DNA from: Macrostomum hystrix | Lineage: Eukaryota > Animalia > Platyhelminthes | NCBI GenBank assembly: GCA_950097015.1 | Contig: CATNEN010000011.1 | Location: 4,464,001-4,528,000, forward strand | Length of the DNA stretch: 64,000 bases | Direction: 5' to 3' | In this document: in pieces, positions 1-17,169 of the stretch | How positions within the stretch are numbered: the stretch's first letter is position 1 | How the letters are laid out: every line of letters begins with the position of its first letter | Program-made: the position numbers and the translations under genes | Notes under the pieces: generated by a model | Seen by the model: only the letters and a program-made list of their open reading frames with translations | Database searches by the model: none | Told to the model about the DNA's origin: nothing

Positions 1-2
1 TA

Positions 3-554
3 GCAATCTTACTAAATATATTTAGCAGGAATCAAAATGTTGCACTGCAAATGATATTTTGGATTTGATACTTCGATCCAGCTTGTAACAACTCGATCCA
101 ACCTCAATCCAACTTCGATCCAACTTCTAACAACTCGATCCAACCTCAATGCAACCTCGATCCAACTTTAATCCAACTTCTAACAACTCGATCCAACCTC
201 AATCCAACTTCTAACAACTCGATCCAACCTCAATGCAACCTCGATCCAACTTTGATCCAACTTCTAACAACTCGATCCAACCTCAATCCAACCTCGATCC
301 AACTTTGATCCAACTTCTAACAACTAGATCCAACCTCAATGCAACCTCGATCCAACTTTGATCCAACTTCTAACAACTCGATCCAACCTCAATCCAACCT
401 CGATCCAACTTTGATCCAACTTCTAACAACTCGATCCAACCTCAATGCAACCTCGATCCAACTTCGATCGAAGTATATTGATTATCGAATATGATGAAGC
501 ATAGCGAAGTGTTATCATATATCCGCCAGTTCTTGTCTTCAGTTTCGTTTATTT
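3..554 (+). repeat. Left terminal inverted repeat: unique outer ~70 bp, array of 10-11-bp modules in a 53-bp higher-order unit, unique inner ~90 bp
   Basis: cttctaacaa recurs at 124, 177, 208, 261, 314, 367 and 420 (53-bp period with one 31-bp unit). Outer gcaatcttactaaatatatttagcagg and inner agtttcgtttattt both match the right arm. Confidence 0.95.
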
Positions 555-1880
555 CTTTTCACACTTTTTCAGGAGAAGCTGCTGAAGAGTTCCTGCGACG
601 CAGACCTTCCGGATCCCGGGCCTGTTTTACCCTGTCCTACGCTGCCGTCTATTGTTGTCTTCTCTCTGTCTGACGGCCAAGCAATTGACACTGTTTGTCA
701 ACGTCTCTGTGCGTGTACTCGAGCTTTTAGTGCCCTGAAGATTCGAGTTCGCGAAGGTTTCCGTCGATGCGGTCACGATCAAGTTGCTGTCGTACAGCTG
801 GTCGCTGATTCGACTAAAGCAGCCTTCCTACACAGTGTTTACGGCAGCGGTGGAAAGTGCCAGGCGGAGCATAGAAGAAACGGAGCTATTTGGTTGCAAG
901 CAGCAGTTCATCCAACAGTTCTAAGTCCGACTGAAAATGCTTCTTTCTCTTCGCGCCGTCAGCCTGCAATTTGGCGCTTGCCTTCAAGTCGGCCGGTACA
1001 GCGTTTGCGTCAACAGGTACTGCACGATATTCGGCAGTTGATTGCTGTCGCCGACATCACTGCGCTCCGAACACTATCTGCTTTTATTCGCTGCTTGTCT
1101 AGCATGCAGCGAATGCCTCAAAGGCGGCGACGACGAACACAGAACGGAAACCAACTGTATGCGGACGAGCGGCAGCAGGAAGAGGAAGAGAGGAAGAAGC
1201 AGCAGCAGGAAGAGGAAGAGAGGAAGAAGCAGCAGGAAGAGGAAGAGAGGAAGAAGCAGCAGCAGGAAGAGGAAGAGAGGAAGAAGCAGCAGGAAGAGGA
1301 AGAGAGGAAGAAGCAGCAGCAGGAAGAGGAAGAGAGGAAGAAGCAGCAGGAAGAGGAAGAGAGGAAGAAGCAGCAGCAGGAAGAGGAAGAGAGGAAGAAG
1401 CAGCAGGAAGAGAGGAAGAAGCAGCAGCAGGAAGAGGAAGAGAGGAAGAAGCAGCAGGAAGAGGAAGAGAGGAAGAAGCAGCAGCAGGAAGAGGAAGAGA
1501 GGAAGAAGCAGCAGGAAGAGAGGAAGAAGCAGCAGCAGGAAGAGGAAGAGAGGAAGAAGCAGCAGGAAGAGGAAGAGAGGAAGAAGCAGCAGGAAGAGGA
1601 AGAGAGGAAGAAGCAGCAGCAGGAAGAGGAAGAGAGGAAGAAGCAGCAGCAGGAAGAGGAAGAGAGGAAGAAGCAGCAGCAGCAGGAAGAGGAAGAGAGG
1701 AAGAAGCAGCAGCAGCAGGAAGAGGAAGAGAGGAAGCAGCAGCAGGAAGAGGAAGAGAGGAAGAAGCAGCTGGTTACAAAGACGAGAAAGCGAAATATGG
1801 AGATACTCAGTCGGACAGATCCCTTAGCTCCAAAACGAGCATTGCGGCAGCGTCTGCAGTTGGTCAAGAATAATCGGTAA
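491..1880 (+). CDS. Putative accessory gene of the transposon (unknown N-terminal domain + long Q/E/R/K charged helix); candidate exon 1 491-508, exon 2 from 573
   Basis: The frame of ORF 894-1880 is open without stops back to 498. A pyrimidine-rich acceptor ttttcag ends at 572. ATGATGAAGCATAGCGAA (491-508) followed by gt would splice in frame. No family recognised; further exons may be interrupted by the LINE. Confidence 0.5.
1171..1769 (+). repeat. Purine-rich coding minisatellite (cagcaggaagaggaagagaggaagaag variants, 24-36 bp) encoding (Q)nEEEERKK
   Basis: Directly visible tandem array, about 20 units. Confidence 0.95.
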
Positions 1881-2076
1881 TAAAATCATATGGTAATGTG
1901 CTTAAAAAGGTATGCTAGTACATTTTTACGTCTCCGTTGCAGGCATCTTAGTAACCCTGAAGTCGTATTTTTCTGACAAAAACGTATCCTACATTTATTT
2001 GTCTAGTTTCAAATCAAGTAATGATGTTTATAAACTTGTCTTCCTACAGTAGTTTATAGTCACTAACTATGTATAG

Positions 2077-5000
2077 ATAAGCTCTATGTACTTCAGACAA
2101 AAGTGTGACAAAAGTCTTGAGGTCCCCAATTGTCTGTGCCTCTATACAGATACAAAATATGCTCTGGTACTAAAAATAAAGCAAAAGCAGTCTGAAGAAC
2201 CCCTGTATATCTTAGGGTGCTATATCCCACCGGAAAATTCTAAATACTACAAAGAAGATATATGGGAGGAGATTAAATATCTCATCCAGCTCTTCTCAAG
2301 AGAGGGCTCCGTATTAACAGTAGGTGACTTCAATGCACGAACTGGCACATTACAGCCCAGCACTAGGGATAAGTTTCCCAGACAGAATCAGGACTCTGAG
2401 AAAAACAAGCATGGATTAAGACTGATGGAAATGTGCTCCGAGACCAAGAGCACGATTCTGAACGGAATGACTCAGGGTGACATTATGGGAAATTACACGT
2501 TTAGTAGCACACTAGGCCGAAGTACCATAGACTACGCTATTGCATCCATGGATAAAGTGGATATTATAAAAGACTTCTTTATTCATCCTCAAAGCTTTCT
2601 GTCCAGACATTGCCCGCTAACAGTCACTCTGATTTTTCCTGATCATGTCCAACCAGAACACGCAAACCAGGAAAAACATGAATCCTTCCCAATGCCTCCA
2701 AGATGGGACACTGAAACGCAGGGAAGTTACATTGAGGCATTGAATAACAAACAAAGCGAAGAAATAATTAGAAAGTTGCAATCTATCGACGCACACGATG
2801 GAAAATCCCTGGAAAATTTGTTCTCGAGCTTGACCAACCTGCTTAGAGACTCAGTGGCAGAAAGCTGCGCAAAGACAATCATTCCGAACAAGTTCTGGAC
2901 AAATCGAGACGAGACACTAAGAAACTTGAGCAAATCATTAAAGTACGTGGCCAGGAAAAAAAGACGTAGACCAACTGACAGCGCGCTGGCATCAGAATAT
3001 AATGGGCTAGCGAAAAAATACAAACAACAGCTCAAGAAACTTAAGCAGATGGACATAAATGACTGCATTCAGAAAATGGCGGCTAACGGAACCTCAAAGG
3101 GATTCTGGTCCGGTCTTAGAAGAGCAGAAGAGTTGCTGTTCCCCAGCAGGAGACTTAACAGATCTCAAGCCCCAATCGCTGACATCGCGGACAACCTAAC
3201 CAAAGTGTTTAACGCACATCCTTTTTCGGGAACCCAGCCGCGTCGCACAGATGAAGCAGTTAGTCCCGAAGATTTAATTAGCTGCGTAGATCTCGATAGA
3301 GCAGTTAAAAAGCTAAAGAGAAGAAAGGCTGCAGGAATAGATGGTATAACAAATGAGCACATTATCTACGGACAAGAGAAGCTAAAACCCGTACTTCTGA
3401 AGCTTTTTAACGCAAGCGTAAGACTCGGCCAGACTCCTGCACAGTGGTCAAATGCCCTAATCACACCGATTTATAAAAAGGGTTCCCGTAGTGACCCCAA
3501 AAACTACAGACCCATAAGCGTGCTGCCTGCCCTGGCTCGCCTGTTTGCCTCACTTATCTATGAAAAGCTAGAAACTCATATTCGCACCCTCGACTTGCTT
3601 TCAGCCAGTCAAATAGGAAATAGAAAGGGCTACCGAACTTCAGACCACATTGCCACTCTCTTGACGTTGATCCACAACAAAAAGCGTCGCAAAAGGCCAT
3701 TTCACTTAGTGTTCTTTGACTTAAAAAGCGCATTTGACATGGTCCACCATCCAACACTTTTCCAACGACTTAGGGAGTTAAAGGTCAGCCCAGAAATAAT
3801 CGAAGCAATACAAAGCATGTACTCAGGAGCTAAATTCCAACTGAAGATCTCAGATGGCCAAGCAACTAAGGCAAGGAGCATAACAAATGGAGTAAGACAA
3901 GGCTGTCCCCTATCCCCTCTACTCTTCTCACTCTATATAGATCCTTTGAGCACAATGCTAAGGGATTCATTTCGCAGCGACACCTTCATTAAAGATGAAC
4001 AAATCAACAACTTGCTATACTGCGATGATTTAGTGATCTTTGGAGAGAATCCTCGAGAGTTGCAGAAGGGCCTCGATAAAGTGTCAGAATTTTGTCAGAG
4101 CCACAAGCTAGAAATCAATATGCAAAAAACTAAGGTTATTAGCTGTTGCCCTGACCCATCAAAGACGGCTAACAAACTATTTCTGCAGGGACAACTGTTA
4201 GATAGCGTCAAAGAATGGAAATATCTTGGCTTTCACATCAATGCTAAAGGAACCGTGGATTCCCATGCCACAGAGATTAACAAAAAATGTGGATATCCTA
4301 TTCTTCTCTTAAGGAAATTAGCCAGCCATGGGGCGGTCAGATACAATCAGCTCATGCTGTACTGCACAGCAATGATAGAAAGCATAGCTCTGTACGCCTC
4401 TGAGGCCTGGGGGGCTTTTGTCTCGTGGAACCTGGGTCCTTGGGACCGCTGTCTTTTTGAAAGAGTAAACATCAGGTGCTGTAAAGCCATACTACAAGTC
4501 AGCCAAAATACGGATGGCAACGGGGCCCGCTCGGAGTTAGGCAGATTGCCTTTATTATACAACATCCAGAAAAGAAGCATTTCGTACTGGGCCTCCATAA
4601 CAAGCCGGCCGGACTCCATAATTTCCAAGTTATTGGCGGACCAAACATACAGTGATGTTGGAATCAAAGCAAAGACCAACAATGAGGTTATGCTGAACTG
4701 CAGAGGCATTAGTCCTGCAAAAGCAATTGGAAACCACAGGAAAAATTTCGTTTCTCAGTTCGATACCCATTGGAGACAAAGGACACAGAACTCAAGCAAG
4801 CTAAGTCACTTCTATTACTCCTTTAAGCAATATTATTCAGCCGAAAAATATTTACAACAAATATACAACCCGGAGTGGAGACGTACCATAGCCTCGTTTA
4901 GACTAGGAAACCATAAGCTAGCTTGCGAAACATTGCGAACTGCGAGACCGAAAATTCCGTATGCAAATAGATTATGTAGTAAGTGCAAAACAGAAGTTGA

Positions 5001-5469
5001 AAACGAGGTCCACTTCCTTTTTAAGTGCACTTGGAATAAGTATAGCGCAGTACGTTCGAAATTTGAGACGGAAGTTTCTGGGAAAACCCCCAATTTCATA
5101 TCCTTAACAGCAGAAGAAAAATCTAACTACATAATGGCTCAAGACGATAGGGAAACCGCTGAAGCTTTAGCAAAATACATCATAGAAATATCTAAAATAA
5201 GGGAACAGCTGCCCTGAGACTACGAGATTTTACTAGCATTCAACAATAGATATTTCATAATTTGTTTTATCCCTGGCGTCCCTTGTGTTTTTACTGCTCT
5301 TATTTTTAATACCTTTGCTTTCCCTTCCCAGCTCGATATTTGATTCCTACTTAACTTCGCTTTTTATGTTGCTTTTCGTTGTTCATTTAAATGTGTTGTT
5401 AAAAAATATATATATAAAAAAATCAGCACCCATAGATGGCGTGCGCGTTTTAATAATAATAATAATAAT
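2077..5469 (+). mobile_element. 5'-truncated non-LTR retrotransposon (LINE; CR1/L2/RTE-X-like, clade not resolved) nested in the DNA transposon
   Basis: Partial APE + RT + C-terminal CxxC..HFLFKC ORF; T-rich 3' UTR ending in an AT-rich tract and (AAT)6 at 5452-5469; boundaries approximate, no TSD found. Confidence 0.85.
2086..5217 (+). CDS. LINE ORF2 (endonuclease C-terminal part, reverse transcriptase, Cys/His tail)
   Basis: YIPP, GDFNART, STIDY, SRH (APE); KAAGIDG, NYRPIS, DLKSAFD, GVRQGCPLSP, YCDD, KYLG (RT); RLGNHKL..CSKCK..ENEVHFLFKC. In-frame TAG at 2074-2076, so the N-terminal APE motifs are absent. Confidence 0.92.
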   Translation: MYFRQKCDKSLEVPNCLCLYTDTKYALVLKIKQKQSEEPLYILGCYIPPENSKYYKEDIWEEIKYLIQLFSREGSVLTVGDFNARTGTLQPSTRDKFPRQNQDSEKNKHGLRLMEMCSETKSTILNGMTQGDIMGNYTFSSTLGRSTIDYAIASMDKVDIIKDFFIHPQSFLSRHCPLTVTLIFPDHVQPEHANQEKHESFPMPPRWDTETQGSYIEALNNKQSEEIIRKLQSIDAHDGKSLENLFSSLTNLLRDSVAESCAKTIIPNKFWTNRDETLRNLSKSLKYVARKKRRRPTDSALASEYNGLAKKYKQQLKKLKQMDINDCIQKMAANGTSKGFWSGLRRAEELLFPSRRLNRSQAPIADIADNLTKVFNAHPFSGTQPRRTDEAVSPEDLISCVDLDRAVKKLKRRKAAGIDGITNEHIIYGQEKLKPVLLKLFNASVRLGQTPAQWSNALITPIYKKGSRSDPKNYRPISVLPALARLFASLIYEKLETHIRTLDLLSASQIGNRKGYRTSDHIATLLTLIHNKKRRKRPFHLVFFDLKSAFDMVHHPTLFQRLRELKVSPEIIEAIQSMYSGAKFQLKISDGQATKARSITNGVRQGCPLSPLLFSLYIDPLSTMLRDSFRSDTFIKDEQINNLLYCDDLVIFGENPRELQKGLDKVSEFCQSHKLEINMQKTKVISCCPDPSKTANKLFLQGQLLDSVKEWKYLGFHINAKGTVDSHATEINKKCGYPILLLRKLASHGAVRYNQLMLYCTAMIESIALYASEAWGAFVSWNLGPWDRCLFERVNIRCCKAILQVSQNTDGNGARSELGRLPLLYNIQKRSISYWASITSRPDSIISKLLADQTYSDVGIKAKTNNEVMLNCRGISPAKAIGNHRKNFVSQFDTHWRQRTQNSSKLSHFYYSFKQYYSAEKYLQQIYNPEWRRTIASFRLGNHKLACETLRTARPKIPYANRLCSKCKTEVENEVHFLFKCTWNKYSAVRSKFETEVSGKTPNFISLTAEEKSNYIMAQDDRETAEALAKYIIEISKIREQLP

Positions 5470-5992
5470 TTACCCTTCCTATATACCCTGATACTTAAAA
5501 TGCACGTCCCTGCTTTCGTTCATTTAATATATACTTTTTGCGAGTTTTTCGACGTTAATTCTATTTTACAAGGACTGATGAACTTTGTTTGACTAAGCTT
5601 GAAAACCTGGTTCAGTTGTTCGCTTTACGTACGGTTCTAGTGTAGTAATTTTTCGCAGTAGCTAATTACGCAATGTTACGCAATAATACATGTTGTACTT
5701 TGAATGTACTTCTTATTAGACAGCTGTCACCTTCACGAAAAAGAAAAATAAATTTATTTGGTGAATGTGCACGTTCGGGTGCCTCAATGAAAAAAAGACT
5801 GAACAAATTGTGATTTCAGTACATTTCAATCAACTTTTACTCTGTGCTTTTCACTAACAAAAGGTGGTAAATGCTATTGATTCAATAAAAAGAAACTGGC
5901 AGTAAATACAGCACGTACACTTGTGCCTTGACACACGTAGCTAACTGTACAACAACTTTTGGAGAAAACGGCTGCCTATAAACAAGAAGAGA

Positions 5993-6080
5993 GGTTGGAT
6001 GGAGTCGTTACAAGCTGGATCAAAGTTGGATTGAAGTTGTTTCACGTTACATTGAGTTGTTAGAAGCTGGATCGAAGTTA
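5993..6080 (-). repeat. Degenerate internal copy of the TIR repeat modules, just downstream of the transposase stop
   Basis: gttacaagctggatcaaagttggattgaag and gagttgttagaagctggatcgaagt match right-TIR modules. Confidence 0.75.
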
Positions 6081-6111
6081 ATATATTCAGAATCGGTCTC
6101 AAATTGTATCG

Positions 6112-9100
6112 CTACTGGCCTGATGTTTCCTCCGAGTTAGTAATCGTGTAAATGTACAGGTTAGCCCTGTTTCCCAGAGGTGGCTGGCGTCCACGCTCTA
6201 CAGCGGCGGTCATGACACCCTTGCTTCTTGCCAAGTCGTCGTATTTAATAGTTCCTGAGGCGTACCAGATGCGGGACAAATAGTGCCCCCCTTCCTTGAA
6301 AGTTGTAGCACGATGTTGATATCTGAAGATTGTGAATTTGCCGTTACAGCATAGAAGTAAAGTTAGCAATGCTTATGTATTAGTGCATGCAAGACAGCGA
6401 TATGTAGAGCCTTTAAAAATGAACTAAGAATACTACGTTTCTCTCTTACTGAATACTGCAGTCCGAAAAGGGGCGAACCACTTGAGAAGGGGCAGCTCGG
6501 CTGGCGCCCAATGGATCAGAGTCTGTGGAGGAGATGACTAGAACCGGTGGAGGGCTGAACTGAAACTTCGGAGCCTGACTTCGACGCACGTGATCGCAGA
6601 CTGAGCACGGCCCATAGGACTCAGAAGAAAGAAAATCTCGCAGATAATCCTCGACTGTGCCTCCAGCTGCACAGTTACTTCCAATAGTGATTGCGTGTCC
6701 ATAGGAAAGTTGCTCTGGATTTGGGCAACGCGGGTTGAGGCACCGGCTTTGATACACTAGTCTGTGCTTTGAACCAAGGAGCTTCATACATACGTCAAGC
6801 TCACTGCCGAAGAGGCCAATTTCGATTTTCTGATTTGTCCTGATGAAACGTTCACTGCTGAATGCGTCGAGTTGAAGAAGAAGCTTTGCTCGTGCATGCA
6901 AAGCTTGCTTCTCGGTGGTGGACTGCGATGCTTCGTTCAGAAAAACTACCAATGGATCCTCAACAATATGTTGGAGACTTGCTTTGAATCCAGGTTCATC
7001 CAGATAGGCTATGGTTAAGGCCGTGAGCAAGTTGTCTGCTGTGCAAGCGTTGTACACGTATACGCTCATAGATCCGCCTCGAGAATCTGGCACACCAGTA
7101 GCCAAACCGGAGTTCCTCAACGTGGCAAATTCCAATGCCTGTCGAGGTGGTCTTCCCTCTAAAGGATAGGTCCTGGAAGTCTACAAGAGAGAAATGGAAC
7201 AGGAACACAAAGTTATCACCGTCTGTTAAATGGCCACCAACTGACGAAACAATAAGCACTGTCCTACGTAGACCATTGTACTTATGGTGTACGTTATGTC
7301 CGTTGCAATAAATGAAATAAATGAAATGTAAAATACATTAATAATAAAGAGTATTATAAAATACAAGAAAATAAATACGTAATGCAATAAATAATGAACA
7401 ATCCACTACTTGCCGACGGTACATAAGCCGGTAGACGACGCTTTTTGTTTACTACAGGTTGCAGCGGGACATCTGCAGGCCGAGCCTGTTGAGAGTTGAC
7501 CATTGGACAAAAGATGTCAGACTTTCGTTTCCGGGTTTTATTCGACAATGGCACCGTTGGCGCACCTTGCTGTGGCTGCGACTCTGACGCTGGTGACGAA
7601 TGCTGCTCTGGCTGCGACTCTGACGCTGGTGGCGAATGCTGCTCTGGCTGCGACTCTGACGCTGGTGGCGAATGCTGCTCTCGCTGCGACTCTGACGCTG
7701 GTGGCGAATGCTGTGGTGGCTGCAGCTCTTCTTCAATATCATCTTCTTCCAAAGAAGTCACACCTGTTACACGGTACATGTCTCTCTTGAACAGAATTTC
7801 GTTCCCATTGTGATGAGAATGGAGCGCCTGGATGAACTCAGAGAGACTGACTTGTTTACTCTCAAAGACACTGTTCTTCATAAGGCCAATCCAGCGCTCC
7901 GTGTGCCCCTCCGTAAATCGTGAACTGCTGGGCATAATGCCGCAGATAAGAGGGAGATACGGAGTGAATGTATTGGTTATGCGTTCAGCCAAAGCCGGAC
8001 ATACATAGGCGTTCAGACTATCAGTAGACTCGTCAAACGGCAGTGCACTCACTTCCAGTTGAACTTCTTGCCGGATTTGTTCAGCCCGCTGCCAGAATGG
8101 GGACCGGCGCATTATGGTTCCGTCTGCATTGACTTCTATTTGTGAAGATTCGTTCGTCTCTTGATCCAGAGTCTCGAACTCGGCACGGACGCTCTCCATG
8201 TTGCTCATTACTCTTAGAAATTTTTTCGGACAACATCCTAGATGCCGATCCATTCTTTCAACTACGGCTTCCGTAGGAGCCATGAGCACAAGGTAGATGG
8301 CTCTCAACAGCCTGTCAGCTGTTTGAATGCTGTCGATCGCTACCATGCACGCCATAGACCGCAGCCAGAACTGTTTGACTGCCCTGTTACTGCAATTGGT
8401 TACTTCCTTCAAGCGAGTCATCTCCTTGACTAGATGACTTCGGCCAAGGCCGATGACAGGAAGGGGATCCCAATCGCTGTCCTTAGTCAAGTGATGAAAG
8501 CATTCTTTGATGTAGAGCGACAGCGATAGACCATGAAAGCAGCCGATGAGTCCGTGTAAAGTGGCAAAATTGAAGTCTGTAACCACCTGCGAAACGCGAA
8601 CTGTTGACAAAAATGTCGTACATTCTCTAAACCAAACGTCCAGGCAAAAGCGCAGGGTGATTCCTGTCTGAGATGTCGATAGAATCTCCAACAATGGCAT
8701 CACTTTCCCACCAACGGTAGGGTTCTGAAGCACCAGAGCGTGATAGTAGATGGGCTTGGTGCAACTGCTGGGGCGCTGATGGATTGGAGCAGCAGTTGAA
8801 TCCATTCCCATACGTATGGGCCAGCCCCTCAGCTGCATCTCCCGTAGACTCTGAAAGGGACGGGAATGGAATAGAATGATGGTCTCGGCCCGACCCTCAC
8901 TCTGGATAACCTTTCTGATATACGCGGGTTGTAGGACCCTCTCAAGTCGGCGCAGTTCTATCAGGTCATCCATGTCTGGAACTCCCAGCTCAGCTCTGCG
9001 CAGTCGCTCAGCTGCAATGCGTAGGGCCTCTGACGAAGGCACCTCACTGAGGGGTTCGTTGGCGGCAATGGCCGCTGCGACCCTGTAAGAGTTCGAAACC

Positions 9101-9992
9101 AGCGTCGATCTCGCGAGCTTATATCGCCGTTCACCAGTCAGCCGCCGACTTCGAGCCGCAGGGTGGTTCTCCAATGGCGCAGTGACTGTCCGGAGTTCCC
9201 ATGATGTCAAACTCGCATCTTTGGCTTCCACAATAAACGTTGCTGGACAGGTAGGCTCGCAGCAGTAGACATGAGCGTAATGAATCCCCGTCTTTCTGCG
9301 AAACTTTCCTACTTTTTTCGCGAGACAGCACGGTTCAACCGAAAGAGCAAAAAGGCGAACCACGTCGCTGAACCAATCTGGCTTTAAAACACCGTCACGG
9401 AGAAGTCCTGCGGGCTCGCTGAAGCTCTGGTGGAAGATAGGCAGAATTGTCGAGGAGGAAGAACTGAAAAGAGATGGTTTTAAAGGAAGACATTGTCAGT
9501 GCCAATGTCATCTGCCAATGACATCTGACTAAATAAAGGGCACGGACAGTTCGCAACAGGCATGCAGAAATAGTACGTGAAACAAAAAGGCTATCTTACA
9601 TGCAGCGCGTCTCATCAGTTGAAGAGTCTGCGTTACATTCAGCTGTTTCGATGGGAACGTCCTCAGAAATGTCCTTGTAATTACGTAGCAGAAATGTATA
9701 GACGTACTTTTTGTTTACATCAGAAGGAGGAACGTGAAAAAATCTGCACAGACGCGGCAAGCGATCGTCATCTGACCGACGATGGCTAGGAAGTGGAGAA
9801 CTAATATACTCCTCAGGGTCAATACCGCACAGCTTGAAGAAATCAAGCAGACTTGAACGAGTCAGTTGCCGTTCTAGAATAAGGAGAGACGAATAAAAAA
9901 CGAATGTACTATACTCGTATAGTATATCAACTACGCCTTTCACGCCCCAGATTCTGAGCCGTTGTAAACTTACTTAAAGAATCATCCGCCAT
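6112..9992 (-). CDS. Spliced MULE/NOF-like DDE transposase with C-terminal USP (C19)-like cysteine protease; predicted exons 9992-9974, 9873-9600, 9463-7423, 7180-6450, 6322-6112 (~1091 aa)
   Basis: Joins ORFs 9596-9943, 7354-9363, 6446-7135 and 6112-6369 with phase-compatible GT-AG introns. Start in ccaccATGg context. Motifs: zinc-finger-like YCCEPTCPATF..NH; D (MDST), D (VTDF), H (RSHLVK), E (TERW); protease NACTADNLL, PPPVLVI, GGHY, KYDD. The 7422-7181 intron is the least certain. Confidence 0.75.
7570..7712 (-). repeat. 36-bp coding tandem repeat (QHSPPASESQPE x4) in the transposase-protease linker
   Basis: gctgcgactctgacgctggtggcgaatgctgctct repeated; visible in the 7354-9363 translation. 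Confidence 0.9.
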
Positions 9993-10056
9993 GGTGGACC
10001 AAAACTGAAAGGTCCTGAAATTGAAATTGAAAGGAGGCGAAACTATAAATAACAAT

Positions 10057-10820
10057 AAATAAACGAAACTGAAGACAAGAACTGGCGGATATATGATAAC
10101 ACTTCGCTATGCTTCATCATATTCGATAATCAATATACTTCGATCGAAGTTGGATCGAGGTTGCATTGAGGTTGGATCGAGTTGTTAGAAGTTGGATTAA
10201 AGTTGGATCGAGGTTGGATTGAGGTTGGATCGAGTTGTTACAAGCTGGATCAAAGTTCGATCGAGGTTGCATTGAGGTTGGATCGAGTTGTTAGAAGTTG
10301 GATTGAGGATGGATCGAGGTTGGATTGAGGTTGGATCGAGTTGTTACAAGCTGGATCAAAGTTGGATCAATGTTGGATTGAGGTTGGATCTAGTTGTTAG
10401 AAGTTGGATCAAAGTTGGATCGAGGTTGGATTGAGGTTGGATCGAGTTGTTAGAAGTTGGATCAAAGTTGGATCGAGGTTGCATTGAGGTTGGATCTAGT
10501 TGTTAGAAGTTGGATCAAAGTTGGATCGAGGTTGGATTGAGGTTGGATCGAGTTGTTAGAAGTTGGATCAAAGTTGGATCGAGGTTGCATTGAGGTTGGA
10601 TCGAGTTGTTAGAAGTTGGATTGAGGTTGGATCGAGTTGTTAGAAGTTGGATTAAAGTTGGATCGAGGTTGCATTGAGGTTGGATCGAGTTGTTAGAAGT
10701 TGGATCGAAGTTGGATTGAGGTTGGATCGAGTTGTTACAAGCTGGATCGAAGTATCAAATCCAAAATATCATTTGCAGTGCAACATTTTGATTCCTGCTA
10801 AATATATTTAGTAAGATTGC
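10057..10820 (-). repeat. Right terminal inverted repeat (764 bp; 212 bp = 4 x 53 longer than the left arm)
   Basis: Reverse complement of the left arm, from aaataaacgaaact (10057) to gtaagattgc (10820). Confidence 0.95.
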
Positions 10821-11394
10821 CACCAGTATACTTTTCTTCAAAGTTTACCCCCAAAAACCAATGTGACAAAAGAACACCTTGGTTAATTATAGACAAAATA
10901 AATCCTTTTACATTAATAGACTAGACTTTCAAGATTTACCTTTATGCCTATCATTATTAACATGGTGATGGATCTTTGTATATTCACAATTATGCATCCA
11001 TTTATTAGCCTACTTTTCTTTAGCAAACAACTTTTGCTTTCTTTTGGGTAAGCAAACAACTTAGCAGAGGTTTTTTATAGTATAGTATCCTTTCTATAGG
11101 AAAAGGCCTATTATAAAATCAGCTTAGAGAAGGCCATAGAAAAAAGCTATATTTAGAAGGACCATTAACTTCGTGGAGCATGCATTATATTATAAATACT
11201 ACATACATTGTAAAAATGCATCTTCACCCTCAACTAGGCAACTAAGGCATTGCAAGGCTTATAGCTAGTATAGGATCTGTAATATTTCGACAAATTAGAA
11301 CACCACCTTTACTAAATTATAGAGTACATATATATATATATATATATACAAAATATACAAATATAAATATAAGTATATATACAAAAATATATAC

Positions 11395-13657: not shown

Positions 13658-14687
13658 TCCATGTACCTTGGCTTAACAACTTAACAAGACAAGCTGCTTG
13701 CCTGTGCCAAAAAATCTACCACTAGGCCTAAAAGCAAGAGCACCTATATTTTTTATAATTAAATGTAAATCTATCATTTTGACTAGTTATTGATTGAAAT
13801 AAATATAGAAACATTATATAGTCAATATTGTAGAGTAGTATAGTAGACAGCAGTTGATTGTCACTATTGCTAGGCCTACCTGTTTGCTTTTTATGTCTTG
13901 TAGGTTTTTTAAACTTTAATTAAGAACTCTATAAGTATAATTCTTTAGATTAGAATAAATAAAAATTATTTTAGTGTTTATATATATTTTTTCTTGCCTA
14001 ACTAGACTGGTTTTAAACTTATTCTTTTGAGTTTGACAGTTTGACACTGAGGCAAAATTTGTTTCATTAAAATAAATCGAGACCTTCCTGAGTAGACTTC
14101 AACAATTCAGTGCCAATTTAAAGATCTGAAAGATATTTTCCATATAAATGCTTCGAAATTTTCTAGTACACAATTCTGTAAATATGATACTGGTCTAAAT
14201 AACTTTAGCAATTATTTGTCATTTATCTGGTTGCACCTCTTTAACTCTAACAGTCAAAATATGCTATAAGGATCTAGTAGAACCACTTAAAAGCTAGCAA
14301 GAAAGAGGCCTGAAGTTTAGAAAACAGAAACTGATATCATATATAGTTTAGAGTCAAGGGATACAAATTGTCATGTACTTTTGATATGTTGTCTACTTTT
14401 AAATAATGTTTGCTTCTAAATAATTTATTTTGTACTGCACCAAGATAAATAACGTATAGTATATTGCATTAAAAATTTCTTTTTTGTTGTGTTGTTTCTA
14501 ACCTAGCTGCTGAGAGTAAAGGAATTGTAGAAACAACTATGCTTTTCCTGGTGTTGTACTCTCTGCTATTATATTAAAACTCAATATAATTCAAGGTTAT
14601 TGTGTTCTCTAAAATGTTAGCAATTGCAATGATGGTAACTTATTAAAGGAGGTTGACAGAAAAAATTATTTTCCAAATATAATGGCT

Positions 14688-17169
14688 AATTGTCTAGGTT
14701 ATATTGGCCAGAATATAATTGTCTAGGCTATATTGGCCAGAATATAATTGTCTAGGCTATATTGGCCATAATATAAATGTCCAGGCTATATTGGCCAGAC
14801 TATAATTGTCCAGGCTATATTGGCCAGAATATAATTGGCCAGAATATAATTGTCCATGCTATATTGGCCAGAATATAATTGGCCAGAATATAATTGTCCA
14901 GGCTATATTGGCCAGAATATAATTGTCCAGGCTATATTGGCCAGAATATAATTGTCCAGGCTATATTGGCCAGAATATAATTGTCCAGGCTATATTGGCC
15001 AGAATATAATTGTCCAGGCTATATTGGCCAGAATATAATTGTCCAGGCTATATTGGCCAGAATATAATTGTCCAGGCTATATTGGCCAGAATATAATTGT
15101 CCAGGCTATATTGGCCAGAATATAATTGTCCAGGCTATATTGGCCAGAATATAATTGTCCAGGCTATATTGGCCAGAATATAATTGTCCAGGCTATATTG
15201 GCCAGAATATAATTGTCCAGGCTATATTGGCCAGAATATAATTGTCCAGGCCATATTGGCCAGAATATAATTGTCCAGGCTATATTGGCCAGAATATAAT
15301 TGTCCAGGCCATATTGGCCAGAATATAATTGTCCAGGCTATATTGGCCAGAATATAATTGTCCAGGCTATATTGGCCAGAATATAATTGTCCAGGCTATA
15401 TTGGCCAGAATATAATTGTCCAGGCTATATTGGCCAGAATATAATTGTCCAGGCCATATTGGCCAGAATATAATTGTCCAGGCTATATTGGCCAGAATAT
15501 AATTGTCCAGGCTATATTGGCCAGAATATAATTGTCCAGGCCATATTGGCCAGAATATAATTGTCCAGGCTATATTGGCCAGAATATAATTGTCCAGGCC
15601 ATATTGGCCAGAATATAATTGTCCAGGCTATATTGGCCAGAATATAATTGTCCAGGCTATATTGGCCAGAATATAATTGTCCAGGCTATATTGGCCAGAA
15701 TATAATTGTCCAGGCCATATTGGCCAGAATATAATTGTCCAGGCTATATTGGCCAGAATATAATTGTCCAGGCCATATTGGCCAGAATATAATTGTCCAG
15801 GCTATATTGGCCAGAATATAATTGTCCAGGCTATATTGGCCAGAATATAATTGTCCAGGCCATATTGGCCAGAATATAATTGTCCAGGCTATATTGGCCA
15901 GAATATAATTGTCCAGGCTATATTGGCCAGAATATAATTGTCCAGGCTATATTGGCCAGAATATAATTGTCCAGGCTATATTGGCCAGAATATAATTGTC
16001 CAGGCCATATTGGCCAGAATATAATTGTCCAGGCTATATTGGCCAGAATATAATTGTCCAGGCTATATTGGCCAGAATATAATTGTCCAGGCCATATTGG
16101 CCAGAATATAATTGTCCAGGCTATATTGGCCAGAATATAATTGTCCAGGCTATATTGGCCAGAATATAATTGTCTAGGCTATATTGGCCAGAATATAATT
16201 GTCCAGGCTATATTGGCCAGAATATAATTGTCCAGGCCATATTGGCCAGAATATAATTGTCCAGGCTATATTGGCCAGAATATAATTGTCCAGGCTATAT
16301 TGGCCAGAATATTTAATTGTCCAGGCTATATTGGCCAGAATATAATTGTCCAGGCTATATTGGCCAGAATATAATTGTCCAGGCTATATTGGCCAGAATA
16401 TAATTGTCCAGGCTATATTGGCCAGAATATAATTGTCCAGGCCATATTGGCCAGAATATAATTGTCCAGGCTATATTGGCCAGAATATAATTGTCCAGGC
16501 TATATTGGCCAGAATATAATTGTCCAGGCCATATTGGCCAGAATATAATTGTCCAGGCTATATTGGCCAGAATATAATTGTCCAGGCTATATTGGCCAGA
16601 ATATAATTGTCCAGGCTATATTGGCCAGAATATAATTGTCCAGGCTATATTGGCCAGAATATAATTGTCCAGGCCATATTGGCCAGAATATAATTGTCCA
16701 GGCTATATTGGCCAGAATATAATTGTCCAGGCTATATTGGCCAGAATATAATTGTCCAGGCCATATTGGCCAGAATATAATTGTCCAGGCTATATTGGCC
16801 AGAATATAATTGTCCAGGCTATATTGGCCAGAATATAATTGTCTAGGCTATATTGGCCAGAATATAATTGTCCAGGCTATATTGGCCAGAATATAATTGT
16901 CCAGGCCATATTGGCCAGAATATAATTGTCCAGGCTATATTGGCCAGAATATAATTGTCCAGGCTATATTGGCCAGAATATTTAATTGTCCAGGCTATAT
17001 TGGCCAGAATATAATTGTCCAGGCTATATTGGCCAGAATATAATTGTCCAGGCTATATTGGCCAGAATATAATTGTCCAGGCTATATTGGCCAGAATATA
17101 ATTGTCCAGGCTATATTGGCCAGAATATAATTGTCCAGGCTATATTGGCCAGAATATAATTGTCCAGGC
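14688..17169. repeat. 29-bp satellite array, ~85 units (ttgtccaggctatattggccagaatataa)
   Basis: Directly visible 29-bp period; rare variants ccatatt, gtctagg and a 31-bp unit. Confidence 0.98.

Follow-up and report, generated by a model that had tools for sequence, protein, structure and literature searches.

Can a cut-and-paste transposon carry, in the same protein as its transposase, a protease of the ubiquitin-specific protease (USP) type? The question is raised by a gene on the minus strand (9992-6112) of a 64-kb stretch of DNA from the flatworm Macrostomum hystrix, which we call the window and whose positions serve as coordinates throughout. The beginning of the window (~1-10820) is a Foldback-type DNA transposon, with two inward-reading genes and long terminal inverted repeats (TIRs) built of subrepeats. 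Its minus-strand gene very probably encodes a 1088-residue transposase-protease fusion, the splicing of the window copy being predicted, and the tail of this protein, judged from a structural model, is a USP-fold cysteine-protease domain of ~300 residues. This high confidence applies to the architecture and the fold jointly, and the explanation as a whole we regard as probable.

One predicted protein with a transposase and a protease-like tail

Four long ORF pieces are seen on the minus strand from 9992 to 6112, and the gene model built on them comprises five exons. The start codon (9992-9990) stands in the context CCACCATGG within a short exon 1 (9974-9992), which ends in an A before the donor GTAAGT. 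Exon 2 (9600-9873) continues the N-terminal region and is open, with GT..AG on either side and compatible phases. The transposase occupies exon 3 (7410-9463), in which the motifs are conserved and the identity to proteins of Macrostomum lignano is 29-33%; exon 4 (6450-7158) would supply the thumb, the fingers and the first palm strand of the USP-fold domain, and exon 5 (6112-6322) adds the coding stretch 6322-6115 and the stop codon at 6114-6112. Translated separately, the five open exons sum to 3264 nt, or 1088 codons. All four introns (100, 136, 251 and 127 nt) are of the GT..AG type, with a G+C content of 0.33-0.41 compared to 0.46-0.52 for the exons. An earlier reading of this DNA by a model (the original prediction) had proposed a single frame of ~1091 residues; the single open spliced frame is retained here, with its length corrected to 1088 codons. 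It had also placed an exon start at 7180, which we rejected: this start has phase 0, whereas either donor that exon 3 can use (7410 or the alternative 7407) has phase 1, and the frame is restored by the acceptor CCTTTAG before AG at 7159/7158. The acceptor at 7158 also reproduces the spacing between NKKRR and LxNxG seen in the relatives. The donor sequence of exon 3, GTAGTG, is weak.

All the motifs that the original prediction had listed are present in these open reading frames (ORFs) of the minus strand. Along exon 3 the protein shows a Cys-rich, finger-like N-terminal stretch (9247-9330), the candidate catalytic residues D1 in GMDST (8794-8808) and D2 in VTDFN (8569-8583), the sequence GRSH (8434-8445), the E block TEGHTERW (7891-7914), an acidic SPPASESQPEQH repeat linker made of four 36-bp units (about 7567-7713) and the basic patch NKKRR (7435-7449). 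In exon 4 follow LRNSG (7106-7120), the Cys box YNACTADNLL that holds C38 (7025-7054), the two halves of a putative zinc ribbon, CLNPRC (6725-6742) and CSVC (6596-6607), and PPPVLVI (6533-6553). Exon 5 contains the His box GGHY (6280-6291), KYDD (6235-6246) and NLYIY (6148-6162).

The junction of the two parts is best examined in relatives. An exhaustive HMMER (phmmer) protein search with the exon-4 product returned nine matches, seven of them true relatives (E 1.5e-6 to 2.9e-4); the remaining two are bacterial repeat proteins and were discarded. A 1106-aa protein of M. lignano, P0011 (PAA68264.1, UniProt A0A267F4X5, identified via a cluster look-up and annotated as 'hypothetical protein'), is an intact copy that shows every part of the architecture, down to the His-box exon, and is spliced at the predicted last junction. 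It is collinear with the window, its residues 100-810 matching 9435-7378 (29% identity, E 2e-73), residues 816-1045 matching 7132-6461 (27% identity, E 7e-22) and residues 1061-1105 matching 6294-6142 in the last exon. At the M. lignano locus L001, a single ORF (P0001, 6489-8927) contains the transposase, the acidic linker, NKKRR and the Cys box; after a lone stop the same frame runs on to 9319, where a phase-2 intron begins, and the last exon reads AHW...NYDDL...NLAMYALF. The last intron has the identical place and phase in the window and in L001. Another relative, P0009, unites the TEGHTERW block, a linker and a protease-like domain within a single ORF, and its next exon reads SPGHYFLKL. Since a single ORF without interruption runs from the transposase through the linker to the Cys box in the relatives, the fusion proposed in the original prediction is real. 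Divergence between families is of similar degree in the transposase and in the protease, so that the fusion must be old relative to the split of both Macrostomum families.

The lone stop of L001 (8925-8927) is premature, reading RWR-stop-NG where the intact P0011 has RWRRNG, and the family therefore holds both intact and freshly broken copies. An acidic tandem-repeat linker lies between transposase and protease in every family member (L003, 14-1204; L002, 258-1733; P0011, residues 660-760; window, 7567-7710), and its repeat unit is wholly different in each. The linker is thus conserved in position, and its sequence turns over fast. Neither the exons nor pieces of the core nor the relatives gave a useful match in Pfam, and no match was obtained by phmmer of single pieces against the PDB sequences or by word-index protein searches, one of which the repeat linker probably dominated. 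Metagenome scans with the family alignments detected no relatives.

The fold of the C-terminal domain

The original prediction had described the tail as USP (C19)-like, a description that stands at the level of the fold and marginally at the level of sequence profiles, with Cys and His invariant and an Asp after the His. In a five-sequence alignment N36, C38, C139, C144, C184 and C187 are invariant, and the Cys pairs have the form C-x4-C and C-x2-C (the second pair is C-x4-C in two relatives). All five last exons that were compared share the His, and at the sequence level an Asp is found 12-18 residues downstream. The order of the elements is also conserved among the relatives: LLxNGG, a spacer of hairpin length, the N-x-C box, the two Cys pairs and PPxLV, then His and Asp in the last exon. 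When a nine-sequence family profile (A1) was compared with all PDB sequences, only USP catalytic domains were recovered, USP9X (E 9.6e-4 and 8.8e-3) and USP8, and the alignment to USP9X spans the LPPVL strand as well as the two zinc pairs. The His-box region of P0011 gave a weak Pfam match to Peptidase_C98 (USPL1), with E 0.22, at the right place in the model.

Structural comparison, which the original prediction had called for, recovered the USP fold from a model of the exon-4 product. The AlphaFold2 (AF2) model, made with the alignment, has a pLDDT of 73.9 and a pTM of 0.68, and its core helix (residues 38-53) begins exactly at C38. The best Foldseek match in the PDB is USP30 (E 9.7e-5, probability 1.0), followed by USP18, USPL1, coronavirus PLpro, USP14, USP1 and USP7. 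A second look with VIA-align gave USP-fold structures for all of the best 50 matches (Z 5.0-6.7, ~185 residues aligned, rmsd ~5 A). An exhaustive VIA search of 48,161 representative chains, independent of Foldseek, placed USP-fold proteins at all ranks from 1 to 32, down to CYLD, and unrelated chains start at Z 3.7, with short alignments.

Several results weigh against this assignment. With the five-sequence profile, USP9X and USP8 are again the sole PDB matches but at E 0.23-2.7, which makes the evidence at sequence level marginal. The Pfam models UCH (PF00443) and UCH_1 (PF13423) do not match the exons of the window at E 1, the seven relatives at E 0.01 or P0011:812-1106 at E 10. Foldseek TM-scores are low (0.3-0.39) and the VIA Z scores stay under 8. 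The model covers the exon-4 product, that is, the first 235 residues of the ~300-residue domain without the last 69, and the triad is read from the sequence. The middling absolute fold scores are partly explained by those missing 69 residues, and the argument for the fold lies in the uniformity of the matches rather than in their absolute scores. A profile of the last exon (A2) found no relative among the PDB sequences.

Compared with canonical USPs (MEROPS C19, Pfam UCH PF00443/PF13423) and with USPL1 (C98), the transposon tail has the same order of Cys box, zinc ribbon, PPxL, His and Asp, and the thumb-fingers-palm fold is common to all. It differs from canonical USPs in falling below the thresholds of the Pfam models, in having a ~20-residue beta-hairpin between LLxNGG and the catalytic Cys, and in being joined to a transposase. 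The motif LL(R/K/Q)NGG, conserved ~20 residues before the catalytic Cys (window column 7106-7120), resembles the ubiquitin C-terminus LRLRGG. It is more likely the GLxNxGN motif of USPs, set off from the Cys by the family-specific hairpin. Residue 9 of the model and residue 66 of the chain open the VIA alignment with USP30, and these alignment ranges by themselves suggest that LLxNGG superposes on GLxNxGN and may supply the oxyanion Asn.

The nearest family of the tail is C14orf28/DRIP1 and not the canonical UCH proteins, in the sense that it provides the best match both in embedding and in structure. By protein-language-model features, the exon-4 product is closest to the chordate clusters 'Dopamine receptor interacting protein 1' and 'Chromosome 14 open reading frame 28' (0.97, 205/256), and USP clusters come next (0.86-0.87). 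In a structure search of the ESM Atlas both C14orf28/DRIP1 clusters reach TM 0.68-0.71 over 218-219 residues (rmsd ~4 A), compared to TM 0.43-0.51 for clusters bearing Pfam UCH. A point on the other side is that C14orf28 was not identified among the nine phmmer matches of the exon-4 product. C14orf28 has been placed in the USP cluster of papain-like proteases, and is described as having a deubiquitinase domain with catalytic residues kept and a second fingers-like element (PMC10318531). The extra hairpin before the Cys box in our model may correspond to this second fingers-like element. The C14orf28/DRIP1 proteins are of similar size (~310-330 aa) but differ in being the product of a stand-alone chordate host gene without transposase. 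That they and the tail are specific relatives, the host gene having been domesticated from such a transposon or its ancestor captured by one, and that they are active nuclear ubiquitin/SUMO isopeptidases serving escape from degradation or silencing, is a tentative and rather doubtful proposal. The likeness nevertheless offers a route to the biochemistry and the origin of an uncharacterised human protein. A cnidarian cluster of the ESM Atlas (713 aa, with YqaJ exonuclease and SAP domains) also matches the protease model (TM 0.54). Such model matches suggest that the USP-like module has been joined to other proteins of mobile-element type as well.

What the protease domain may do

The encoded protein would combine a Cys-rich N-terminus, a divergent D..D..GRSH..E core, a fast-evolving acidic linker, the NKKRR patch, which is of nuclear-import-like character, and a USP-fold tail of the C14orf28/DRIP1 type. 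In the mechanism that we propose, the tail would be an active isopeptidase for ubiquitin or a ubiquitin-like protein (Ubl), possibly SUMO, which would enter the nucleus together with the transposase and strip ubiquitin-type marks off the transposase or off the chromatin at the element. The transposase would then be spared degradation, or ubiquitin/SUMO-dependent silencing would be blunted. We consider such a role, as an isopeptidase that protects the transposase or counters silencing, a real possibility, though with somewhat less than an even chance. Ubiquitin itself is not certain as the substrate, given that the SUMO-specific USPL1 and the ISG15-specific USP18 are among the nearest solved folds.

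The proposed enzymatic role has to be weighed against other accounts of the same protein. A tail of USP fold might be a non-catalytic module that binds ubiquitin or Ubl or acts as a scaffold, like PAN2 or USP39/SNUT2, and guides the transposase to its partners or to chromatin that bears the marks. PAN2 pseudo-hydrolases do appear among the structural matches, and the failure of the Pfam UCH models and the lack of the Asn that canonical USPs have five residues before the Cys would fit with a module of this kind. However, Cys and His are invariant across families that are only ~27% identical, with an Asp after the His, the conserved LLxNGG may provide the oxyanion Asn, and the catalytic residues are described as kept in C14orf28 (PMC10318531); all considered, a non-catalytic tail seems to us improbable. 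The presence of coronavirus PLpro enzymes among the fold matches brings to mind a self-processing protease, which would cut, for example, after LLxNGG and free the transposase, and in most relatives there is indeed an NGG ~20 residues before the Cys that recalls the LRLRGG end of ubiquitin. We give little credit to this idea: the window copy has LRNSG and not GG, the motif opens a strand of the domain itself and, from the starts of the alignments, appears to superpose on GLxNxG of the USPs, and a cut there would remove just a short piece of the domain. The window copy could also be a dead relic, or the result of mis-joining neighbouring genes, in which case no fused protein would be made. RNA evidence for the window copy is lacking, since the only run found to contain any of it, with 6% of the words, yielded one 256-nt contig inside exon 3 that includes no junction; to this can be added the weak donor of exon 3, the nesting of a long interspersed nuclear element (LINE) in the transposon and the premature stop in the sister copy L001. 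Against a relic stand the exons, which are all open over the 3264 nt, the TIR arms, which are 99% alike, and the relatives, which hold the junction in a single ORF, and we find this account highly improbable.

Plant KI-MULEs, which belong to the Mutator-like elements (MULEs), carry Ulp1/C48 proteases. An OTU domain is listed for the cnidarian MULE MuDR-6_HM in the table of a MULE survey (PMC6446971). Together with the OTU domains of Ginger elements and Helitrons and the VTD domains of Helentrons, it is likewise an element-borne papain-fold domain that deconjugates ubiquitin or Ubl. The VTDs of Helentrons are active deubiquitinases and have been proposed as protectors of transposition proteins (PMC9741609). 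In contrast to the carriers of Ulp1, OTU or VTD, the domain described here is of the USP-fold class and is in frame with a DDE-type transposase via a repeat linker. The table of the MULE survey lists OTU, SET and PHD as extra domains and has no USP among them (PMC6446971). A literature search, which did not cover Repbase, found no description of a USP-fold domain joined to a DDE transposase, and in GenBank and UniProt the fusion proteins are present only as unnamed hypothetical proteins. A USP-fold protease on a cut-and-paste transposon is not previously reported in the literature found, although the sequences themselves are already deposited. If the domain is active, mobile elements would have independently recruited another class of ubiquitin-type deconjugase, and ubiquitin/SUMO control would be indicated as a general barrier to transposition. 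M. lignano is an established laboratory model, so the role of the domain is amenable to genetic tests.

The transposase superfamily and the structure of the element

The transposase belongs most likely, and we say so with reasonable confidence, to the Mutator (MULE) superfamily and to its Foldback type, on the basis of the TIRs, a 9-bp target duplication in a relative, the convergent genes and the embedding neighbours. The same assignment in the original prediction is thus upheld on indirect grounds (subrepeat TIRs, target duplication, convergent genes and MULE neighbours) and finds no backing in the Pfam MULE model. The candidate catalytic blocks GMDST, DFN, GRSH and TEGHTE(R/L)W are kept in both Macrostomum families, which are 33% identical here. 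Within a putative D..D..[C/D]xxH..E pattern the candidate D, D and E are conserved, and each family has GRSH at the presumed [C/D]xxH position. The original prediction had placed GRSH at the CxxH position, and its conservation in both families makes it a family trait and not a sign of decay. The E block, with a T-x4-E-x6-K spacing, agrees with the MULE pattern. The ten best family-bearing embedding neighbours of the transposase are all MULEs (0.88-0.93), with 163-166 shared features, below the mark of 170, and are to be taken as a lead only. In maize MuDR, mudrA and mudrB converge, each reading from its TIR towards the interior. The Macrostomum element has a gene pair with this MuDR-like arrangement, and the pair recurs in M. 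lignano. Target duplications are of 8 bp in hAT and 7-8 bp in P elements and consist of TTAA in Kolobok, and one of 9 bp is also unlike Transib. The intact M. lignano relative L005 is flanked on either side by a perfect target duplication of 9 bp, CAATCTTCA, a length within the MULE range (8-11). Duplications of 9 bp are listed for MULE groups and for Rehavkus in the table of the survey (PMC6446971). Drosophila Foldback (FB/FB-NOF) and Rehavkus are like the Macrostomum elements in their long tandem-subrepeat TIRs and 9-bp duplications, a likeness at the level of the elements.

Other features of the transposase speak against a place among the MULEs. It differs from them in having GRSH for CxxH, in showing no PHD finger and in lacking a match to the Pfam MULE DDE model (PF10551), at E 1 or at E 10, for the whole or for pieces. 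Its D2-to-E spacing of ~225 residues exceeds that of typical MULEs. The AF2 model of the core, made with a three-sequence alignment, is unusable (pLDDT 45.5), and an RNase H fold is not directly supported. The left outer terminus of the window copy lies at or beyond the edge of the window, so its own target duplication is unreadable. A profile of the transposase core (A4) found no relative among the PDB sequences, and tblastn of the core against plasmids found no IS256-type relatives. The transposase could accordingly be of another superfamily of the [C/D]xxH type, whether hAT, P, Kolobok or a novel one, its long TIRs having arisen by convergence. The missing Pfam match, even at E 10, and the long insertion between D2 and E would suit such an origin, Foldback-like TIRs do occur outside the MULEs (Galileo is a P element), and the MULE neighbours, with 163-166 features, remain under the 170 mark. 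On the other hand, the 9-bp duplication of L005 has the length of MULE, Foldback and Rehavkus elements in the survey table (PMC6446971), and the convergent gene pair is MuDR-like. The spacing within the E block also suits the MULEs. We regard a superfamily other than Mutator as unlikely.

In the left TIR of the element (3-557), unique sequence of ~70 nt at the outer end and of ~95 nt at the inner end encloses the array of 53-bp subrepeats (73-469). The right TIR (10054-10820) has its array of 53-bp subrepeats at ~10142-10753 and, with more subrepeat copies, is longer than the left arm. The arms are 99% complementary between 3-469 and 10354-10820 (467 nt) and 95% complementary between 187-557 and 10054-10424. 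In L005 the arms are 2164 nt long, 100% identical and made of 89-bp subrepeats. TIR arms that are 99-100% alike mark a young family, which is multi-copy in Macrostomum. Two copies of the TIR subrepeat are also found at 5989-6079, directly 3' of the transposase stop and oriented like the right TIR; this remnant has no counterpart in L005 and may go back to a rearrangement. We considered 5989-6079 and 10033-10823 as the inverted repeats of the element and rejected them, for they are direct repeats and the true left arm is 3-557.

The second gene, on the plus strand (491-1880), is convergent with the first and encodes a long charged QQEEEERKK repeat with a basic tail behind it. The gene begins within the inner TIR segment, which is common to both arms, an arrangement like that of mudrB. 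In both Macrostomum families the gene has an N-terminal part of ~150 residues, a charged tandem repeat of E, K, Q and R and a basic tail, and the counterpart in L005 (14992-15885, minus strand) has EKQRELEKQQ repeats. Between the two genes of the transposon sits the nested LINE-type ORF (2086-5217, plus strand), intact-looking and 1043 aa long, in which endonuclease and reverse transcriptase were identified by reading the translation. A similar reverse transcriptase ORF is found at L001 3215-5785, just upstream of the sister copy. About 4 kb past the element, the window contains a 29-bp satellite (14687-17169) with 85 copies at 97% identity.

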